Source: Zygnema circumcarinatum SAG 698-1b (Eukaryota; Plantae; Zygnematophyceae). From it: a DNA stretch of 64,000 bases. Positions 40,790 through 64,000 of this stretch are shown piece by piece. Each line of letters begins with the position of its first letter. Position 1 is the first letter of the stretch. The stretch is taken from contig CM074810.1 in NCBI GenBank assembly GCA_037447605.1, positions 1 to 64,000 on the forward strand. The letters run 5' to 3'. The position numbers and the translations under genes were made by a program. The notes beneath the pieces are model-generated. The model made no database searches and had not been told where the DNA came from. It saw only the letters and a list, made by a program, of their open reading frames with translations.

Positions 40790-41414
40790 ATGCTCGGGGC
40801 GGACGGAGGAGAGAGAGAGAGCTATCTGTCTGGAAGGGCCCTCTGCTGCCCCTCCCCTCCTCTTGTTCCACGTTCGTCTTGAGTGCTGCGTCGGGAGTAG
40901 TTCCTTCAGCGGCGGTCGTGCCCGCCCGGCCGTGTTCCACCAAAGAGCTGCACGGACGAGACAGCCTCCGGGGGGAGGCTGGCGGGATGAAGATGCCCCT
41001 CAGCGGCCTTCCGAAAGTGGGGGGGGGGAACCGGAAGGCGCACGGCCTTGTGCTCGTTTTGCCCCATCCGACCTCAGCCGTCGGATCTGAGTGAACCTCG
41101 GGAGCTCTGTGTCGGTCTGTTCGCCGCATGGTCCCATTCCCGCACACGTGGCGACAGCAGCAGCGTGGACTTGGTGCAGGTCGCTTGTGGAGTCATGCGC
41201 GCTCCCTTGCATTGCTACCACGTGTCATTCACTCGGCGCTGCACCGATAGGCAGCAATAGCTTTTGTAAGAAGCTGCTTTTCCTTCTTGTACGGATACAC
41301 GTTGTTTGCGTCGAGGTTTTCCTCTTTATGAAAGGAGCCATTTGGGGGGGTTTCTCCTCTGAGCTGGGCGTGTCCTGGATGCTGCCTCCGTCAGTCGTCA
41401 CCGTCAAGGCGGGG

Positions 41415-41516
41415 CCCCTCCCCCTCCCCCTCCCCCTCCCCCTCCCCCTCCCCCTCCCCCTCCCCCTCCCATCGCTCGTCCACGCGGCACACTGCGCGCA
41501 CACACGAACACACACG

Positions 41517-41571
<55 letters not shown>
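41415..41571. repeat. Microsatellites (CCCCCT)n at 41415-41470 and (CA)n at 41499-41571
   Basis: Direct reading. Confidence 0.95.
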
Positions 41572-41574
<3 letters not shown>

Positions 41575-42113
41575 CTACCAACCATGGATGGATGGCACGG
41601 ATAGGGCCCAAAGGTTGGTTGGTTCCGCCCTCAATGCCACAAACGACTGTGCTTCACAACTGACCCGGCCCTTCCCTCGTTAGCCTCGCGCTGCCCGCTG
41701 AAGTCGAACACAGCCGCACGATTTGACCATCACTGGGGACAACATTTGCCCTCAATCCTATTTCCTTTACAAGAGGAAGACGGGACGGTGCCGCACTTGA
41801 CGCTTGGGGCAATAACAGTCGTTTTCGAATCTGAGATCCGCAGTGCCAAAGCGACACGTGGCAGTCAGCCAGCGGGGACTCGAATCCAAGGACCGTGCAC
41901 CGCGATTCGCGGCGCCCGTTAGTCAGGCAGTCCGTCCGTCCGTCCGTCCGTCCTGCGATGTTTCCGTGCCAGGCCGAGCGCATGGGCGCTAAGCGACTTC
42001 TCGGCGAGGGCGAGCCCCCCGCCACCACCGGCGAGCCGTGCGTACGGTCGAGGGCAGAGCCGGGCGGGGCGGGCTGTCAGGGTTTGAGCTTGGAGGGTTT
42101 TATACTTTTATTA

Positions 42114-42270: not shown

Positions 42271-43272
42271 TATTAGCCATACGGGAGCGAGGCGCGGTGG
42301 GAGACCGTACCGTACCGTATTATACCGTACTGGGGTCGGGGCGGGCGGCAGGCGGCGAGCTGCGCGACGTGGTGCGACCCCGCCGCGACAAGCGCGCCCT
42401 CCTCAGGTGCCGCGGGCGGCCAGGCGGGCGGTGCATTAATATGGATTTGTCGCGGCGCGGCCGCCCGGCGCCCTCTGCGCGGCGGTGAATCGTCCAAAGC
42501 CGCCGCGGGATCCGCGGAAACCGCCAGGCGGCCACGTCACCGCTCAGTGCGTGCGCCCGCCCGTCATGGTGTCAGGGCCCGCGAGGACAGAGGGAGTGAG
42601 GGAGGGTGCGAGAGCGCGAGGGCGAGAGCGCGAGGCAAGGGCGGGGCGGGGCCGGCCTGCCCGCCTGCCTGCCTGCGCGTGCGCCAAATACAAAATCCTT
42701 TTGGCAGAGCAAGGAAAGGAAAGGTACGCACGCACGCCCGCTTTTGCTGCTTGCTGCTGCCTGCCGCGAGTCTTCTCTCGCAGTGCGTACGAGTGCCGTA
42801 CAGTACGGGCTCACCGCAGGCACCCGCGCCGTACAGTGAACCACGTGGGCTCTTGTCCGAGCGGCCGCACGGAGCCGATCCGCGCGCTCCCTCCGCCCCG
42901 CCCGCCCGCGGGAACGAACGAACGAACCACCAACCGACGGCCCAACGAACGGCCCGCGGCCGCAGAGAGCGCAAGTGGACCCGGACCGCAGCGGACGGGC
43001 GGGCGGGCGGCACAGTGAACCCGGGCGCACAAGTGGACTCAGGGGCCCGCAGTTGATCCGCGGGGCGCCTCCCTCCCTCCCCTCCCTGAAAAACGATCGC
43101 CGACCCTCGCTCCCTCCCGCCCGCCTGCCCTCTCTGCCGCCCGCCCGCCCGCCCTCGCGCGTTTAATTCCCGCGGCCCTTGCCATCTCCTCCGCCATCTC
43201 CCTCTCCCTCTCCCTCTCCTTCTCCCTCTCCCTCGTCCTCTTCCACGGCGGAAAGGCTGTGGCTGTCGCGCC

Positions 43273-45201
43273 ATGGGATCCCTCAGCGAGCCTTCGCTCT
43301 CGCAGCAGCCATTGCAGATACGGAAAGGCTATGCAGACACGTCCTATGGCCAGATTCATTATCGCCGGTAACACACCGACCTCTTCCCTTCCGTGAAACA
43401 CATGCAGCTTAGAACTTACGCCATGCACGCTTGTGTTTAATGCTCAATTAGCTCTTGTGTATGGCGACGACAGTTTGCGGAGCATGAGCAACAGGCTCGA
43501 ATGGGGTTAGGATCTGGTTTATCATTACATCCTGAATACTTTGGGATACATTTGGAGTCCAAGTGTTAACGCAATAGAACATATTGCGCTCGTCATGCGC
43601 GAGCAGAACATCGTTTGCAGGGTGGCAAACTGATTCCCAACACCTGTAGCTGCCCTCCATCCTCCTCATGAGCATCTCTCTCTCTCTTTGCGGTGCCGGC
43701 CGCTCTGTCAAGTGGTTGCAAGTGAGCAGAGTTTAGAGGGCTTGAGTCGGCGGTGGCTGGCAGGTGCGGCGAGGGCCCCCCGGCGGTGCTGCTGCTGCAC
43801 GCGGCGGCCGCGTCGTCGGCAATGTTCGCGTCGGCGCTGCCCCGCCTCGCGGCGCGCGGCCTCGCGGCGGCGGCGCTGGACCTGCCCAACTGCGGCGAGT
43901 CCTATGCGGGCGCGGGGGAGCCGCGGCTGCCCGACCTCGCCAACGCCTTGCTCGAGGCCGCGCAGCAGATCGGCTTCCCGCCCGCCTTCTACGTGGTCAG
44001 CCTCTCAACAGGGCCTCTGCTTGTCCTTGCTTGGTAGCTGTTATGCGGAACCCTCGCTGCCTGCTTTTGTGGGAAAAAAATCCTCGTTTTTCAAGGAGCG
44101 TTCGGGTGAACAGCAGCTTTGTTCTCCCTTCAAGCATATGGATGTCCACTTTGCTTTCTTCGATCCGAAATACCTTCTTCAGCACTCTCCCGCAGTTCGG
44201 CCGTTCAACTCTCCCGCCTTGTTCACTTCTTTTGCATTTGTGGTAAAACTCTATTTTGGTATAACGTTCTTATGCGACCTCTCCCTCTTCTCATTTTCTC
44301 TCTCTCTCATCATGTTGCATGTCCAGGTTGGTCATCAAGCAGGCGCTTCCATGGCCATACACCTTGCGGCACAGTTTCCGGAGTTGGTGAAAAAATTGGT
44401 TCTGTGGGGCGTACCTGTGATGAGCGTGATGAAGCGCGGAGATGTTCTGAGAGAGGAGCCGCCCGACTACAAGGGCGACTTCTTTGGAGTGATCCAATCT
44501 TTCATCGCTGAACGCTTTCCCGATGAAGACTATCCCTGGCAGCTCAAGGTACACAAGCTTTCCATGTTTTGCTGTATCAAGACGGACACTTCCAAACAAA
44601 GCCTCTCAGCATACCCTCCCACAGCCGAGCACAAAAAAATCCACAGAAAACAAAACGACTCAGACTCCTTGCTTGCTTGCAGGTGCGCGGTTTAGTCGAC
44701 ATGCTGCAGAGCGGCGAGCGGCGGCCATGGACCACGCGCCCTATGGCGCTGTGCGACCACGAGGGCCTCCTGCGGCAGATCCGACAGCCCACCCTCTGCC
44801 TCGCGGGGGACCTCGAGCCCCTCCAGAAGGCCACCATGAAGGCCGCCCTGCTCCTCTCCAACGGCAAGTACCACAACTTGGGCCCCGCGGGCTGCGACGT
44901 CGCGGACGAGTTCCCCGCCGAGTACGTGCAGGCGGTCGCGGAGTTCCTGAAGGTCCCCGGGGTCCCCCTGGAGCGGTCGAGCTGCACCATCCCCGAGGAC
45001 AAGAAGCCCGACCCCCCCCGCCGCGCCTCCGCGCACGCGACCGCCCCCCCCGAGGAGCTGCTCGCCTCGCCCGCCTCCTCCCCCTCCGCGGGGGACTTTG
45101 GGGCGGACCTGGCAGAGCGACGGAACTCCGAATCCGAAGGAAGGAGCTTTACTGAAAAGAGGCGGACGACCTTGAAGAGTTTGCTCAAAGGAAAGTTTTG
45201 A
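43273..45201 (+). CDS. Alpha/beta-hydrolase-fold protein A, atypical nucleophile elbow GHQAG, 4 exons
   Basis: Exons 43273-43367, 43764-43995, 44327-44548, 44683-45201. IRKGYADTSYGQIHYRR, VLLLH, ALDLPNCGES, VGHQAGASMA, PELVKKLVLWG, PTLCLAGDLE, DEFPAEYVQAVAEFL. Confidence 0.88.
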
Positions 45202-45654
45202 ACCTGAGGGGAGTCAAGGCGGCGGCTGAAGAAGTTTGGGAGAGCTGCAGGCCTGGTTTGGGCTGGGCTGGGCTGCTGCCATGGCCGGTTCAGAGCACTG
45301 CTGCCTGCCAGACTTGGAACCCCGCGGATGTATGTATTCGTAGGTATTGTTAAATGACGCAGATATGCGTGCTTGTACATATTGGAGGATAGGCAGTGAA
45401 CACGAAGGGCGCTGAAACGGGGGGCGCTGCGAAGATAGACTCTAAACCTGCGGCTTGCAGAAGGGGGATGTAGCGAAGGGTGATGGCCGAGAGGGTGGGG
45501 GCGCACGCCCCTGTCTCCAGTGATAGATCAGACTCGATTTTTTTAGCCTTAACTTTCAAACCATTGCACGAGTGATCAGGAGTCTGTCTGATTGGCACAA
45601 GAGAGAGAGAGAGAGAGCTAGAGAGGGAGAGCGAGAGAGAGTGGGTGACAAAGC

Positions 45655-45687
<33 letters not shown>

Positions 45688-46093
45688 AGAGGGAGCGAGC
45701 GCGCATCCTTTGAGAGCAGAGTCGAGCAAGGCCGAGCGGCGGCCCCGCGTGCCCGCAATAGTCCGTTAGTATGTTCGTACGGACGCCAGCGCCCTTGTAC
45801 GACCGCTGAACGCACAGCATGCGCTTCACCGACATGGGCCGTACAGGTCGCACCGCCGCGCACGGTTCGTGGTGTACGGCTCGCTCGTCAGCTGGTGCAC
45901 GCGTCCGTACAGACTGCCCGGCTCGCGTGTCCGTACCAGAGACCGCCCGTACGGCCGCCCGCCCAGGCGGTGGCTGGTGGGGCCGGGGACCGCAGCGCTT
46001 CCTCCGGGGCGAGGGCGAGGGAGAGGGAGAGGGAGAGGGAGAGGGAAAGAGAGAGGAAGAGGGAGGGAGAGGGGGCGAGGGAGAGGGCCCCCC

Positions 46094-46709
46094 ATGGCCT
46101 GCGAGCCGCGCCGCTGCGACTCGTCCACCTTGGTCTCGAGATCGGGCTCGGGCTCGGGCTCTGCCTCGGCAAGCACAGGCAGCGGCAGAGGGCGAGGTGG
46201 CGACCCGCGGGAGGAGGGCAGCGCTCCGAAGAGCAAGCGCGCGCGCACGGAGCGGCGCGACTGCGAGCCTGCCGCCGCGCTGGAGGAGGGCTCCGTGGCC
46301 GTGCACGGGCGGCAGCTGCACTACCGCAGGTGCGCGGCCGACTGTGCGGGGCTCCTGACAGGGATGGGGGAAGAAGGGGGAGGCGGCCGTTTCGAATGTG
46401 CTTGCTTGCGGATAACGAGGTTCACTTCAGAAAGGGAAGCTTCAGGTTTGGGAGGGAATTTTGTGCCACTCAGATGATGAACTGTCTTCTGAAGGCGGGA
46501 GGATTGGTGGTTCCGATGTGGCTGGAAAGCAGCCGCATGAGTTCTGAAGTCGTTCGGCTTCGAGAAGCCAAATTCGACTTTGCTTTGCTAATTTTGGCTA
46601 AATTTCCTTATCTTCCGCTTTGTGTTGTAGCAGGCATATTGCTGTGTAGAAAACCGCAGATGTAGCAGGATGCTGTTGCTTTAATGGCCTTAAGAAACCG
46701 ATCCCCTTC

Positions 46710-46746
<37 letters not shown>

Positions 46747-47839
46747 CCCCCCCCCCCCCCCCCNNNNNNNNNNCCCCCCCCCTTTGCCCCAACCAGTCCC
46801 CAGAGTCTGGATCCCCCCTTTGCGTCCTAAAATAATGCGGAGTTGTTGGAGCCAACCTCCTCCTTGACAGCGCTGTTCTTATCGGTGGACAGGCTTTTCT
46901 GAACGGGGGTTCAGGTGCGGAGAGGCGGCGGAGAGGGCCGTCCTACTGCTGCATGGAACGCCGTCATCTTCTGCCATGTTTTTGCGAATTCTGCCGGAGC
47001 TGGCGGCTAAAGGCTACGCCGCGGCAGCTCTGGATCTGCCCAACTGCGGGGAGTCCTTCTTCACGGAGGCGGAGCTGGAAATAAAAGACATGGCAGACGC
47101 CGCCATGGGAGCTGCAGACGCCCTGAATTTTCCATTCTCCTTCGCAGTGGTAAGGAGATCCCCTTTTCGGCCGAGAGTCTCTCTCTCATACGCTGGGGGT
47201 GCCCTACTTACTGACTGCCTCCTGTGTGCAGATCGGCCACCACACGGGCGCGGCAGTGGCCCTGCAGATTGCGGCGGACGCGCCGGCTCGCGTGAGGCGG
47301 GCGGTGCTTTGGGGCGTGCCGCTACCCTCCGCGGAGCAGCGGGCGGCCGCGCTCGAGCAGCGGGAGCAGGAGACCGCCTGCCTGAGCACGCAGCAGCTTG
47401 AGGTCTGATGTCCGTACATGGAGCGAAAGAGTGTTGCTTAATGTGACGCAAGACTCGGCTCTTTTTCGCACAAAAATATGTAGAAACGGGGAAAGGCGGA
47501 GCAGTGTGCGTTGAGAACGAGGCTGATTATAGAGAGTGTGATGGGGCTGGGCGATAGCAGGTGAGGGGAGCGACAGCTGCTCTGCAAGCGCCCGACCGCC
47601 TGCGTTGGGGCCAAAGGGCGGCTGCAAGAGTGGACTACGAGACCCTCCTGCGCAGAGTGGACCAGCAGGTGCTCTGCCTCGCAGGGGACCTTGAGACGCT
47701 GCAGCTTCCCACCATGAAGGCGGCATCGCTGCTGCGGCGCGGCCGGTACCACCACGTTGGGGCAGCCGGCCCGCGCGTGGTCGACGAGCTCCCTGAAAAG
47801 TACCTGGAAGTGGTGCACGAGTTTCTCTCGGCTCCGTAG
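46094..47839 (+). CDS. Alpha/beta-hydrolase-fold protein B, tandem paralogue of A, elbow GHHTG, 4 exons
   Basis: Exons 46094-46329, 46915-47149, 47232-47402, 47561-47839; same three intron positions and phases as gene A. LLLHGTPSSS, ALDLPNCGES, IGHHTGAAVA, VLCLAGDLE, DELPEKYLEVVHEFL. Confidence 0.88.
46764..46773. other. Assembly gap (10 N) inside a poly-C run in intron 1 of gene B
   Basis: Run of N characters. Confidence 1.
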
Positions 47840-49408
47840 GCTGGGAGAGGAGTGGGAGGGGGAGGAGTTGTGGCTGCCAACGCAAGTCAGGCGGTTCCTG
47901 TACATATAGAGAGGCTCACCTGAACAAGGTCAGGTTTTTGGAAGAGGGAAAGGGAGGAAGATGGCAGCTTTTATTCCACGAAGTTCCCCCCTCCCCCCGC
48001 CCCCCGCTTTGTTGCAATTTGCCCTGTTTTATCGGTTTAGATTGTCAGGTGAGGGCTATCCACAGTGTTGTCGGTTGTTCGCATTCTGACATCGATTGAT
48101 GATCAATTCCCGCATTGGTTTCTGTTCAAGTGAAGCCCTTATGGAGGATTTTGCAAGGAGGGAGGTACCATGGATTGCGTACTGTGTTGTTGTACACGCC
48201 GGAAGGGAGGGCCTAGGCTGGGGGAGGCAAGCAGACCTTTGTGCTGCGGTTGTGAGGATGTCTCTCGTCGAAAGCCTGCAGTGTTGCTCTGGAATCACGG
48301 AAGCGGAGGCCGGTGCAGACATGCTGCTGTGTCTGGAGTCTGTGATCGTGCGAGAAAGGCAATGACTCAGGCAGGCAGTGCCAAGAGAGTAAGCCTGTGC
48401 CCCCACAGAGTGTGTGGGACTTCGGTCCTATAGACAGAGCTGCCCTCGCTCTCTCTGCTCGCTGAGAGGCTGGCTTGGAGGGAACGATGAATTTTGATCA
48501 GCAGCAACCGTGCCGCGTTTGGCAGGACGTAGCGCCGTGAGGCAGAAACAAAACAATGGCTGATCCCAAAATTGCCCACTCCCACTGCCAAGCCATGCAG
48601 TACACAGTCGCTCATAAGAGCACGAGCGTTACATTAAAGATTCAATGAAAGCGGGAAACAAGGCTTCCCAACGCCTGCCGTGATACCTACTACACCAGCG
48701 CGATTTTTGAATTTGCTTACAAATTAACGAATCTCGTGGGCGATCTCCTGAGCATGCATGCATGCCAGCCTATGCATGGCTCCATTTCCAGCACCAGTCC
48801 ACACGCGCGTGTGTTCGCAGCAGGGAACAAACAACGTGGAGCCATGAGATCACCAAGGGCAGCATTCGCGTCTCCCGTCGGAGCCGCTTCCCACTGGCGA
48901 GCGGGCGCGCTGTCTGAAGACATCCATCAACTCCCTCGCTGTTAACAGTCGCAAATGCGAATCCAACTGGCGAGCACCGTACCTTGCTCAACTGCTCTGC
49001 TTCACTTCACAGCTAGGCCTGGTTAGCTCACACATCTGTTTGGAGGTGCGGATACTCTTTCTATGGACCCTATTGAGGCCAGTTCCAAAGGTACAAATAG
49101 ACGGACGTTCTGAAGTGCAAGGTGTTATTTCCATGCAGTGCAGAGACTCCGCTCCGCAGTCCCCAAGTTCCAGACTGACCTTAAACGCTCCCCCTCACGC
49201 TCGCTGACTCCCACTTTGTGAGACTAGGTTGATATTACGGATACGGCTGCCAATATACTCGATTCAACTCAAGTGACAAAGGCATTCTGGAGGCAGAGTG
49301 CTCCACAGTGGGTTGAACCACTTACAGTGTGCTAGATTCTCTGGAATGAAATAAAGCAATGTTTCTGAGCGTTTCACTTGGGCTCCACGTATGGTTAAAA
49401 TAAAGATA

Positions 49409-52400
49409 TCAGCTTTTGCCCATCTTTTCGGGCAGTGTCGACCCACGCCGAGTCTCTTTAGCCCTGACGTGGTTGTACATCACTACTCCTGCGAAAGCTG
49501 TTCCAGGCCACCTCCAACACCCAAGCCATTCACACATCCTTCGCACACTCATCTCCACTACCCTTCACGTTGCCTCCACTACGTCCCAACTCTCTCCTCC
49601 ATTCCCTTTCCCACTCCCCAAACGACTTCCTCACTACTCTTCCGACAATCTTCAACACGCCCCATGCTGAAGCAGGAACGAAAGAGTTAGCCACAGAATC
49701 TGCCCTCATCAACGGCTGACTCCTAGCCGTACCAGCCTATAGTGGGGAGGGACCTGCCACGCACCTAGGGTGTAGCCTCCAATAGTGACCGCTGTCAAGC
49801 GCGCATCAGGGAAAACGACGGTAGACAGGCCAATCAGCAGCCAGTCCTTCACAACACTGGCGACGCGCACAGTGACAGCACTCGTCCGGCCGAGAACCAC
49901 AAATGTGGATAAGTTGAGAGCGAGGGCACAAAGCGCACTTGAAAAGAATACAAGGAAATTGAACGGTACGGGGTTCGCCAACATCTGTGTTCTTTCAATG
50001 AAGAACCAGGGGATTGACAAAAAGACAAGGCTGTGGACAAAGATCACATATACATGACATGAACATTTGTAAGAAAAAGGAACACAGGGACATGTCATTT
50101 CACTGCACTGCTGCAAACAACAGCCTTGTCGAGGAGGACCCAACACCACAATACCAACAGCCTAGTGGTTAGTGACCTGAGGGGGGCAAAGCAATACTGA
50201 CTGGAAATAGGACTAGAGGCGGCAATGTTATAGAGAAGAGCGCAACGTGATTTTTTTGAAGCAGGTCAACAAAACCAACAGAACATCATCGATTAATGCC
50301 TTCAGAATTGAAAGCAACCTGAATAGACAAAATTGCAATAAATCTACAATTGTAAAAATTGCGAATAGGAAGCTTACCTGCAGGGAGCAATGTAGTAAAG
50401 GCTTGTGATAGGATTAAGGGTGAGCCCCTTCTTCTGTAGCAGCACTTGGGTCAGCACTAGTCGTAGCGCTTCACAGCAGATTCCAGTAATCTGATAGGCT
50501 GTGCCTAAAACGTTGAAATGAATTTCACCATATGATGCCACGGCTACTCCTCCACTTATCCAAACCATAATCGCAAAGATGTCGAGACGAGGCCGATCGG
50601 TTGCGCACAACACGCCCATGAAGAACGTGGCAACAGGCACTGCTCCAAGTACACAGGATGACAGAATTGCTTGTGAAACACGCTCCTTTACACTGAGTAT
50701 GCCTGATGATACTCTTCAACGTGCAGCAGCATTGCTCACGATTGACCATTACACGCGGGGACTTACTCAGGGACTTCAGCATTTGGATGAAAGCGACGGA
50801 AAGGTACAGGTATGCAGAATTTCCAAACCTGCAATGCCAACCGTTGAACATAATAAGTTGCCTTTCGTGAGTCTGCAGTTGAACCTCCGATCTGCCAAAG
50901 GACAAAAAACGACCTCTGCCCCTCGCCTTTCTCCCTCCCGCTCTCCCTCTCTGTCTCTCCCCCCTTTCTCTCACACACACTCTCTCCCCCCTTGTCCCTC
51001 CCCTTCTTTCTCTTTCTACTTTCCCCCTCTTCCCACTCTGCCACTATACCTCCTACTCGCTTTACTGGCCTAGACACAGACGGATTCAATCCTCAAATTT
51101 GGCAAAGTCTCTGCCATTGCCGATTGGAGGAGGCCCCTTCATCCTGCCATACGTAAGGGCTCACAGAAGGCGACTCACCAGAGGCTTGCTGCAAACAGTG
51201 CGCTAATCGGGACTACACAAGTGGTATATCTGCATGGTCCACATAGGAATAATAAAGAGCTGAATTAAACAATAGGTCCAACAAAAAGGAAGATGACTCT
51301 GAGAAGAAGTTAGCTTGTCCTACTCTTACAGATTCGGTCCTCCTTCCAACTTGGAACCATCCCTAACATGCTGAAGAAGAGGCTACAAGAGATATTAAAG
51401 AATGAAATAACCTTATCCATTCCAAAAGTCTTTGCACATTAAACTACGGCTTCATAGACCTTAGCAAGTATGACAAAATGCCACACATACAGAGTCTTTC
51501 TCTCAGACTAATTTGCCTCCATTTCCGACAAGGTTACAGAGTTATTCAATCGAGTCTCAACGAAAAAATTTACAAAGAACAAAGTGCGGACTCGCGGTTG
51601 ATCAAAAGTCGCAAGAAGAAGCTATCATCGCAAGAGACAAAGGTGAGAGAGACAGCTGGCGCTGCCCGAGGAGCCTTACATTGCTGCCGTCATCTTGACT
51701 GGTTCCACCAGCTGGCAGCACAACGAGACACGAAGCAACGCGACAGAGTTACTGGAGCTTCAAACTAACAAGGGTCACTTCCGAGCCAAATATCCAGTAC
51801 CAAGATTGTGAGGGGGGAGCCAGGGAAAAGGAATGAATCAAGTAGGAGTACGGGAAGGAAAGAGCGGAGGAGCCGACAGATGGTAGATACGAGTACAGTC
51901 AGCTTAAATCACTACCCTTCGTCGACTAACTAAACCTTTTGCGGAAAAATAAACATAACTGGAAGCTACAATAAGTGGCATTTTGCCAAGAAAAACGTAC
52001 ATACTGCTGTATCGCCTAAGCTAACCAGGAAAAGCACCAAAAATACCGACCTTGAGTACATGAACAAGTAGTGCGGCGACAGATCCTGAAAATGCCATGT
52101 GGATCATGGTAAGCGTGATTGGAAATGGAAACCCGAAGTAATCTTTGGCCAATATCCACTGCACACGTGCAAAATACCGTTTACAATGGAGTCAAGCAGA
52201 AGCAGCAACTGAAACAGTTCAAAAAAGATTCGTTCAGTTCACCGGCTTTTTTCATTTTCCTGATGATGCCATTGCAATGCAACTGTTTCCAGTGAAGCGC
52301 GTCCTCCGAACAACCTCTGGAGCAATCGCACACCTTGTTGTACATAATGACTCCTGCAGAGAGAGCGATGTAGATGGCGAGAGAGAGGTAGGTGAGAAAG

Positions 52401-52958: not shown

Positions 52959-64000
<11,042 letters not shown>

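Follow-up and report, generated by a model that had tools for sequence, protein, structure and literature searches.

Adjacent alpha/beta-hydrolase-fold genes of Zygnema circumcarinatum belong to an uncharacterized clade with a histidine at the nucleophile elbow

The first 64,000 nucleotides of contig CM074810.1 of the zygnematophyte alga Zygnema circumcarinatum SAG 698-1b (assembly GCA_037447605.1), a stretch that we refer to as the window, carry two neighboring genes with the alpha/beta-hydrolase fold, here called A (43273-45201) and B (46094-47839). Both lie on the forward strand and, as the listing of open reading frames and direct reading indicate, are alike in their four-exon plan and in their intron phases. 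We report that A and B are expressed, spliced and selectively constrained paralogs in an uncharacterized clade related to the Asp-nucleophile dehalogenase/epoxide-hydrolase group. An earlier note on the window, made from its sequence, had correctly recognized two real paralogs that differ at the nucleophile elbow (Gln vs. His) and lack the canonical Ser/Asp-His machinery, and had inferred that the pair diverged after duplication. Our alignments show that the lack of Ser and of the canonical His does not date from after the duplication but is ancestral in a large clade whose members are mostly bacterial.

The elbow-His clade and the active-site residues of A and B

Searches were run exon by exon and trees were built per exon, and in full-length analyses A was represented by P0001, a protein of 363 residues that was the sole match in a word search with the stop-free frame of A exon 4, made in a collection that does not include the proteins of the window. 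P0001 stems from transcript-like contigs of ~1.4 kb, present in three runs of another sample. It shares 54-77% identity with the exons of A (76% with exon 3), reproduces the three exon junctions of A and retains GHQ-G, GD-E, AGC and the C-terminal end of A. It carries PF00561 and PF12697, and the model of its core (predicted local distance difference test [pLDDT] 95.3, predicted template-modeling score [pTM] 0.92) displays the canonical fold and strand/helix order, with a helical lid. The nearest solved folds are ordinary alpha/beta-hydrolases, with 15-21% identity and template-modeling (TM) scores of 0.75-0.80. The exons themselves give only generic Pfam matches to Abhydrolase_1 and Abhydrolase_6. 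For Abhydrolase_1, whose cut-off is 25.8 bits, exon 2 of B scores above it (32.9 bits), exon 2 of A just below it (25.6 bits, profile positions 1-71), and the exon 3 pieces are weaker (17.7 and 14.4 bits); the last exons of A and B, searched alone, have no Pfam match. Together with the fold model, these Pfam matches place the pair in the alpha/beta-hydrolase superfamily.

The catalytic positions could be assigned by profile alignment to solved enzymes. The GHQvG motif of P0001 aligns with the aHDwG elbow of haloalkane dehalogenases, and when a 119-sequence profile of the family is aligned with Cif-like 1 (PDB 7jqx), the elbow His falls on the nucleophile Asp and the column occupied by Cys in A and Pro in B falls on the catalytic His. 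Exon-wise hmmsearch places the Gln of A and the His of B in the same column 100 of this profile, and both Glu residues in the acid column 216. As the exons match with expect (E) values of 1e-17 to 1e-28, chance is excluded. The pair is thus devoid of a Ser/Cys/Asp-acid-His triad: the elbow holds Gln (A) or His (B), the His position Cys (A) or Pro (B), and only the acid, a Glu, is present. These assignments bear out the residue calls of the earlier note, as does the DLPNCGES motif that it had seen in place of D-x-P-G-x-G-x-S, which is real and common to the zygnematophyte orthologs. The oxyanion loop reads LLLHGTPSSS in B and LLLHAAAASS in A.

The relatives of A and B form what we term the elbow-His clade, which is defined in this analysis and is not a curated family: its members combine a G-x-H-T-G elbow and an H-(Q/G/A)-x-P-S-S loop with an Asp/Glu acid, and they lack the canonical His. 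With the core of P0001 as query, an exhaustive HMMER search over 1.84 billion representatives returned 3386 matches at E<1e-3, 607 of them at E<1e-10. We counted residues in the best 150 of the 3386 matches, split into 204 aligned domains. The elbow residue is His in 142 domains, Gly in 22 and Gln in 15, followed by Ala, Arg, Glu and Phe; Ser or Cys occurs there in none of the 204, and Asp at most once, in one half of a two-domain protein. The residue after the elbow is Thr in 142/204, and the acid is Asp in 142 domains and Glu in 25. The canonical-His column most often holds Thr, Val, Ser, Gly, Leu, Met or Ile, His not being among its common residues, and it holds Ser/Arg/Ile/Glu in the orthologs of A. 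A column that varies so freely gives no particular meaning to the Cys and Pro on which the earlier note had dwelt. Members are either single domains of ~265 residues or fused tandem pairs of ~565 residues, and since 42 of the 74 single-domain members have GHHTG, the motif of B is the family consensus. B displays every feature of the clade (GHHTG, GDLE, Pro in the His column and LLLHGTPSSS), and A is a derived member that has lost the elbow His-Thr and keeps the other features.

The sources of 30 of the best 150 matches were looked up. They are mostly bacterial or metagenomic, and the eukaryotes seen among them are all streptophytes. The closest relatives come from Closterium, Mesotaenium and Spirogloea, with Gln (one Glu) at the elbow, followed by Selaginella (GHHIG) and Klebsormidium (GHHTG). 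A locus search with a narrower alignment yielded nine loci, in metagenome-assembled genomes (MAGs) of Dehalococcoidia/Chloroflexota, Burkholderiaceae, Solirubrobacteraceae and Acidimicrobiia. As the earlier note had supposed, the family is uncharacterized: we found no curated family and no NCBIfam model near its cut-off, no solved structure belonging to the clade among the PDB sequence and fold matches listed, and nothing relevant in a literature search on the elbow-His family and its GHHTG and GHQAG motifs. The names given at the source are either generic or evidently assigned by software, and the Atlas clusters are hydrolases without a name. For these proteins, automated labels like "pimeloyl-ACP methyl ester carboxylesterase," "haloalkane dehalogenase" and "bifunctional epoxide hydrolase 2" are almost certainly mistaken.

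Two of the Closterium sp. NIES-64 gene models, P0002 and P0006, carry two or three copies of an exon-3-like segment (VLWGVPMLGFMERGDVLREEPPD...WQLK), separated by unrelated sequence. These repeats could be either mis-annotated retained introns or an assembly artifact, or a real internal exon duplication.

Transcription, selection and history of the pair

Contigs of two sequencing runs from different studies (X1 and X2), taken from the Logan collection and aligned to 43200-47900, confirm the gene models. Although these runs are not labeled as RNA in the record, their RNA content is evident from spliced contigs, which have GT..AG joints at all six predicted introns: 43367|43764, 43995|44327 and 44548|44683 in A, and 46329|46915, 47149|47232 and 47402|47561 in B. 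Word depth is 164 and 54 for the spliced contigs of A, and 68 and 60 for those of B, compared with 3-15 for the intron pieces, unspliced fragments of low depth that accompany the spliced contigs over the region. Since spliced contigs come from two studies, A and B are transcribed and correctly spliced. Two runs that are labeled as RNA, X8 and X10, gave no contig on the region and are uninformative. The coding sequences amount to 355 codons plus stop for A and 306 codons plus stop for B, with a GC content of 0.67-0.69 in exons and 0.49-0.54 in introns. The earlier note had thus placed the genes properly, with intact frames, but what it described as open frames are in each case four exons joined by splicing rather than a continuous reading frame.

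The contigs also settle two oddities of B. Its lid is shortened by ~25 residues, profile columns ~143-172 being missing, and the joint 47402|47561 leaves no room for a missed exon behind it. An assembly gap lies within its first intron; since spliced contigs join 46329 to 46915 (the one over exon 1 covers 46090-46326, joined to 46912-46915), this gap is outside the reading frame, and unspliced contigs end at ~46700 within the intron. Family likeness in B exon 1 is weak and confined to its last 16 residues, as judged by the family profile.

A and B are 42-55% identical per exon, with nonsynonymous and synonymous divergences (dN and dS) of 0.48 and 1.46 and hence a dN/dS of ~0.3. Between A and P0001, the proportion of nonsynonymous differences (pN) is 0.19, and no numeric dN/dS can be given because synonymous sites are saturated. 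These values indicate that both genes are under purifying selection. The earlier note had named missing expression, neutral dN/dS or assignment to a characterized family as outcomes that would speak against it; the spliced contigs, the constraint and the NCBIfam results all went the other way.

The per-exon trees suggest a duplication of some age. Exon 2 of B groups with A and zygnematophyte sequences (Shimodaira-Hasegawa-like approximate likelihood-ratio test [SH-aLRT] 98), which have a PN[CAS]GES variant in common, and exon 4 falls in an internally unresolved clade of zygnematophyte sequences and a Selaginella protein (SH-aLRT 94). Exon 3, which carries the elbow, lies outside the Gln clade (support 95, Spirogloea included) and looks like the family consensus. 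With a dS of ~1.5 and exon 3 of B outside the Gln clade, the duplication is old and not a recent tandem event. From these short and weakly resolved trees we infer the order of events: B probably kept the ancestral elbow region, and the lineage of A would have fixed the His-to-Gln replacement early in Zygnematophyceae. In the A orthogroup, which spans Closterium, Mesotaenium and Spirogloea, the elbow His-Thr has become Gln-Ala/Val/Ser/Thr. The orthogroup further acquired a C-terminal tail that is disordered, carries conserved basic-x-x-Ser motifs and finishes in a basic-hydrophobic end. Three islands of the tail are kept in six orthologs, namely ER[ST]S right after the core, an RRAS-type site and a terminal (E/D)RRxSxEK(K/R)R...L(K/R)GK; they resemble targets of basophilic kinases, set before the basic-hydrophobic end. 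The features of both genes are collected in Table 1.

Table 1. Coordinates and content of the features of A and B in the window
Feature	Position	Strand	Content
A exon 1	43273-43367	+	ATG; N-terminal hairpin ...KGYADTSYGQIHYR; ends in phase 2, CG|gt; family profile E 5e-8; tblastn with P0001
A exon 2	43764-43995	+	LLLHAAAASSAMF, oxyanion-loop region; DLPNCGES; family profile columns 21-94, E 4e-24
A exon 3	44327-44548	+	Elbow GHQAG 44330-44344, Gln codon CAA 44336-44338; first half of lid; columns 97-153, E 3e-17
A exon 4	44683-45201	+	End of lid; Glu codon 44815-44817 (AGDLE); Cys codon 44893-44895; columns 173-261, E 5e-28; stop 45199-45201
A C-terminal tail	~44950-45198	+	Islands ER[ST]S, RRAS, RRxSxS...LLKGKF; alignment with five orthologs
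B exon 1	46094-46329	+	ATG; Ser/Gly-rich extension with KSKRARTERR, then ...GRQLHYR; ends in phase 2, AG|gt
B intron 1	46330-46914	+	585 bases; assembly gap (N) 46764-46773 within (CT)n/(C)n tract
B exon 2	46915-47149	+	LLLHGTPSSSAMF; DLPNCGES; family profile columns 21-92, E 3e-24
B exon 3	47232-47402	+	Elbow GHHTG 47235-47249, His codon CAC 47241-47243; columns 97-142, E 5e-19
B exon 4	47561-47839	+	Glu codon 47693-47695 (AGDLE); Pro codon 47771-47773; columns 173-262, E 4e-24; stop 47837-47839

Several other observations concern the genes and their surroundings. The GC content at third codon positions (GC3) is uneven between exons 2, 3 and 4, at 0.97/0.61/0.95 in A and 0.67/0.89/0.76 in B (43765-45198 and 46916-47836), and is only 0.43 in the orthologous transcript of P0001. 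Dense microsatellites of the (CT)n, (CA)n, (GA)n and (GAGGGA)n types surround both genes (41400-41600, 45590-45700, 46000-46090 and 46710-46790). The transcript contig of A extends to ~45591, where it ends at a microsatellite, and a spliced contig of B (2046 nt, X2) runs >1 kb past the stop codon, through a long 3' untranslated region or read-through downstream. A six-frame profile scan of the window reveals A and B only and no third copy. It gave no support to a weak tblastn match at 55436-55657 on the reverse strand (29% identity to residues 188-253 of P0001, E 0.036), which is probably due to chance. Downstream of B and on the opposite strand, an open reading frame piece at 49709-50149 has a weak, below-cut-off match to PF03151 (triose-phosphate/nucleotide-sugar transporter; E 5e-4) and probably represents a single exon of a transporter gene.

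Proposed elbow-His chemistry and competing explanations

To see which residues accompany the elbow His, we compared 137 His-bearing with 40 non-His domains, the algal Gln clade being excluded. The acid Asp/Glu of column 216, which is Glu in both A and B, is found in a fraction of 0.97 of the His-bearing domains vs. 0.57 of the others. The elbow His is likewise tracked by a lid His/Tyr in column 189 (0.77 vs. 0.33; Thr in A, Gln in B), by Thr/Ser in column 101 (0.89 vs. 0.55; Ala in A, Thr in B), by an oxyanion-loop Ser/Thr in column 34 (0.73 vs. 0.35; Ala in A, Thr in B), by Arg in column 173 (0.55 vs. 0.15; Arg in both) and by His in column 17 (0.91 vs. 0.57; His in both). When the elbow His is scored together with columns 216, 189, 101, 34 and 173, B has five of the six residues, only the lid His/Tyr being lost, and A has two.

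The tandem arrangement of A and B also has parallels in the family. Among 56 two-domain proteins, 18 have His at both elbows and ~30 combine His with another residue (Gly, Phe, Gln, Asn or other). The model of one such protein, P0020 (pLDDT 94.8, pTM 0.93), has no disordered linker, which indicates a fixed pseudo-dimer. In a Chloroflexota MAG (L009:5001-6412), another gene of the alpha/beta-hydrolase fold (Abhydrolase_1, E 9e-6) lies directly behind a GHHTG gene, and the two form an unfused tandem pair. The family thus repeatedly combines an intact unit with a degenerate one, and B and A do likewise as separate genes.

We consider the chances to be about even that the elbow His, supported by the acid, provides general-base or general-acid catalysis with no covalent intermediate, in units that are dimeric or pseudo-dimeric, with B as the reactive unit and A as a non-catalytic paralog. 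The acid carboxylate would hold the elbow His where the canonical His is missing, and this elbow His would act on a small molecule as its general base or acid, with neither an acyl- nor an alkyl-enzyme being formed. One half of a dimer or pseudo-dimer may lose its His. B would be the unit that is reactive or processes a ligand, and A a binding or regulatory paralog, probably controlled via phosphorylation of its tail and possibly the partner of B. Both the His-acid contact and the reaction are putative, and it is the co-variation of the two residues (0.97 vs. 0.57) that suggests them. We advance with much less assurance, as a tentative and on the whole doubtful proposition, the wider view that the G-x-H-T-G clade embodies an undescribed catalytic solution, either a nucleophile-free dyad of elbow general-base His and retained acid or a displaced triad, and is typically a pseudo-dimer with one half possibly non-catalytic. 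A and B would then be its eukaryotic, unfused version, B as the elbow-His unit and A as a phospho-regulated Gln pseudoenzyme partner, gained from bacteria early in streptophytes and kept in conjugating green algae.

A number of findings weigh against a catalytic B with A as its partner. The co-variation statistics ignore phylogenetic relatedness. Besides its ~25 lid residues, B lacks Tyr10, Gly16, Gln34, Trp42, Trp156 and the lid His, all invariant in the single-domain bacterial subfamily, and may therefore be non-catalytic too. No B-type ortholog was found in other algae; a word search with B exon 2 gave 128 candidates, none of them significant, a weak negative given its length window of 97-310 residues and its requirement for exact shared words. 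The adjacency of A and B could be a mere relic of duplication, their interaction being putative. Finally, bacterial gene neighbors are not conserved across independent loci, and those that recur are shared only pairwise (Liv-type ATP-binding cassette [ABC] transporter genes, GntR-FCD regulators and a luciferase-like monooxygenase), so that these loosely catabolic but unconserved contexts hint only weakly at enzymes.

A non-enzymatic explanation, in line with the earlier note, would make A and B, and conceivably every member of the elbow-His clade, receptors of ligands or scaffolds whose pocket serves only for binding. Both proteins are devoid of a canonical nucleophile and base and of the lid His/Tyr associated with an elbow His; A has a conserved phospho-type regulatory tail and B an N-terminal extension with a basic KSKRAR stretch, and the long-term conservation of Gln in the A orthogroup fits a binding role. 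We nevertheless hold this to be improbable, since hundreds of bacterial proteins strictly conserve His-Thr together with Asp and these residues decay jointly, a pattern that resembles a catalytic set, and since the bacterial neighbors (ABC transporter, GntR-FCD regulator, monooxygenase and short-chain dehydrogenase) are catabolic; moreover, the D14/KAI2 receptors keep an intact triad, and we found no kinship to them. A non-hydrolytic or ligand-related role for the pair, as the earlier note had envisaged, is possible. The opposite case, that B and the bacterial members are true hydrolases with a displaced triad, appears less probable still. In such a triad the elbow His would be the base, backed by Asp/Glu, and the nucleophile would be a hydroxyl, either that of the oxyanion-loop Ser/Thr (X of H-G/Q-X-P) or a different one. 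The tracking of the elbow His by column 34, where B and P0001 both have Thr, speaks for it, as does the proximity of oxyanion loop and elbow in every alpha/beta-hydrolase. However, that column holds Ser/Thr in only 73% of the His-bearing domains, the rest having Asn, Ala or Val, Thr is a poor nucleophile, and the geometry is putative; as A has Ala in column 34 and Gln at its elbow, this explanation cannot hold for it. To the idea that the pair are decaying or neutrally drifting duplicates devoid of function we give next to no credence. The truncated lid and low-complexity N terminus of B, and the lack of a B ortholog among the sequences found, might suggest it, but it is already contradicted by the intact frames, canonical splice sites and spliced contigs of both genes in two runs, by the dN/dS between A and B and the low pN between A and its distant ortholog, and by the taxonomic breadth of the A orthogroup.

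Significance and comparison with known systems

The alpha/beta-hydrolase fold is among the best-studied enzyme scaffolds. The known exceptions to its usual chemistry are of two kinds: decarboxylases, lyases and dioxygenases, in which the C-terminal His is kept, and pseudoenzymes that occur in isolation. The elbow-His clade, in contrast, is large and conserved and lacks the canonical His; it would represent a new arrangement for catalysis or else the largest coherent set of non-catalytic members of the fold. Because B keeps the His and its neighbor A has anciently fixed the His-to-Gln replacement and has a regulatory tail, the pair constitutes a natural experiment, and this in the lineage that is sister to land plants, where hydrolase-fold proteins repeatedly turned into signaling components.

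The earlier note had cited GID1, D14/KAI2 and the cofactor-free dioxygenases as other uses of the fold; our searches showed no link of the pair to any of them in sequence or family. The nearest characterized relatives are haloalkane/fluoroacetate dehalogenases and Cif-like epoxide hydrolases. Dehalogenases, among them haloalkane dehalogenase subfamily II (HLD-II), are the best sequence matches among solved structures (E 6e-7 for P0001 and ~1e-31 for the family profile); they share with the clade the fold with helical lid (TM 0.75-0.80) and an acid after strand 7. The N-terminal motif is very similar as well, LHGNPTSSYLW in HLD-II and LLHQSPSSSAMW in the clade, a likeness that makes the clade look like an offshoot of the Asp-nucleophile dehalogenase/epoxide-hydrolase group. 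In contrast, the dehalogenase pentad, made up of an Asp nucleophile, a His base, an Asp/Glu acid and two halide-binding residues (the Trp after the nucleophile, and Asn or Trp), is incomplete: the nucleophile Asp has given way to Gln in A and to His in B and the family, the following Trp to Thr or Ala, and the Asn of HGNP to Ser, Ala or Thr, and the catalytic His is absent. With neither nucleophile Asp nor catalytic His, a covalent alkyl-enzyme mechanism is impossible. The single-domain members scanned score 23-64 bits against the NCBIfam haloalkane dehalogenase models, for cut-offs of 241-466. The top profile match is the Cif-like epoxide hydrolase Cfl1 (PDB 7jqx), which aligns end to end over 261 profile positions (E 3e-32) and has an H-G-x-P type loop and lid topology like those of the clade. 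Where Cfl1 has an elbow Asp and a C-terminal-loop His, however, the clade has His and a variable residue; the pair thus has neither the Asp nucleophile nor the His base of epoxide hydrolases, and in the lid His/Tyr column it has Thr (A) and Gln (B).

The remaining systems are more distant. Cofactor-free dioxygenases of the HOD/QDO type rely on a His-Asp dyad, for which the pair offers Cys/Pro in the C-terminal-loop His column, where His is not common across the family. D14/KAI2 and GID1 share with A and B the superfamily fold and the streptophyte setting. D14/KAI2 keep a working Ser-His-Asp triad, absent from the pair, and GID1 is derived from carboxylesterases of the HGG/GxSxG type. The PDB sequence, fold and NCBIfam matches listed include none to D14, KAI2 or RsbQ, nor does GID1 occur among the sequence, family or fold matches listed. 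For the proposed role of A, ABHD5/CGI-58 offers a parallel. There is no detectable specific kinship between the two, and ABHD5 keeps the canonical His and Asp, whereas the parent family of A never had Ser. Yet ABHD5, a Ser-to-Asn pseudo-lipase and co-activator of ATGL, resembles what we propose for A: a long-conserved protein with an amide at the elbow that acts by binding proteins or ligands and is phospho-regulated.

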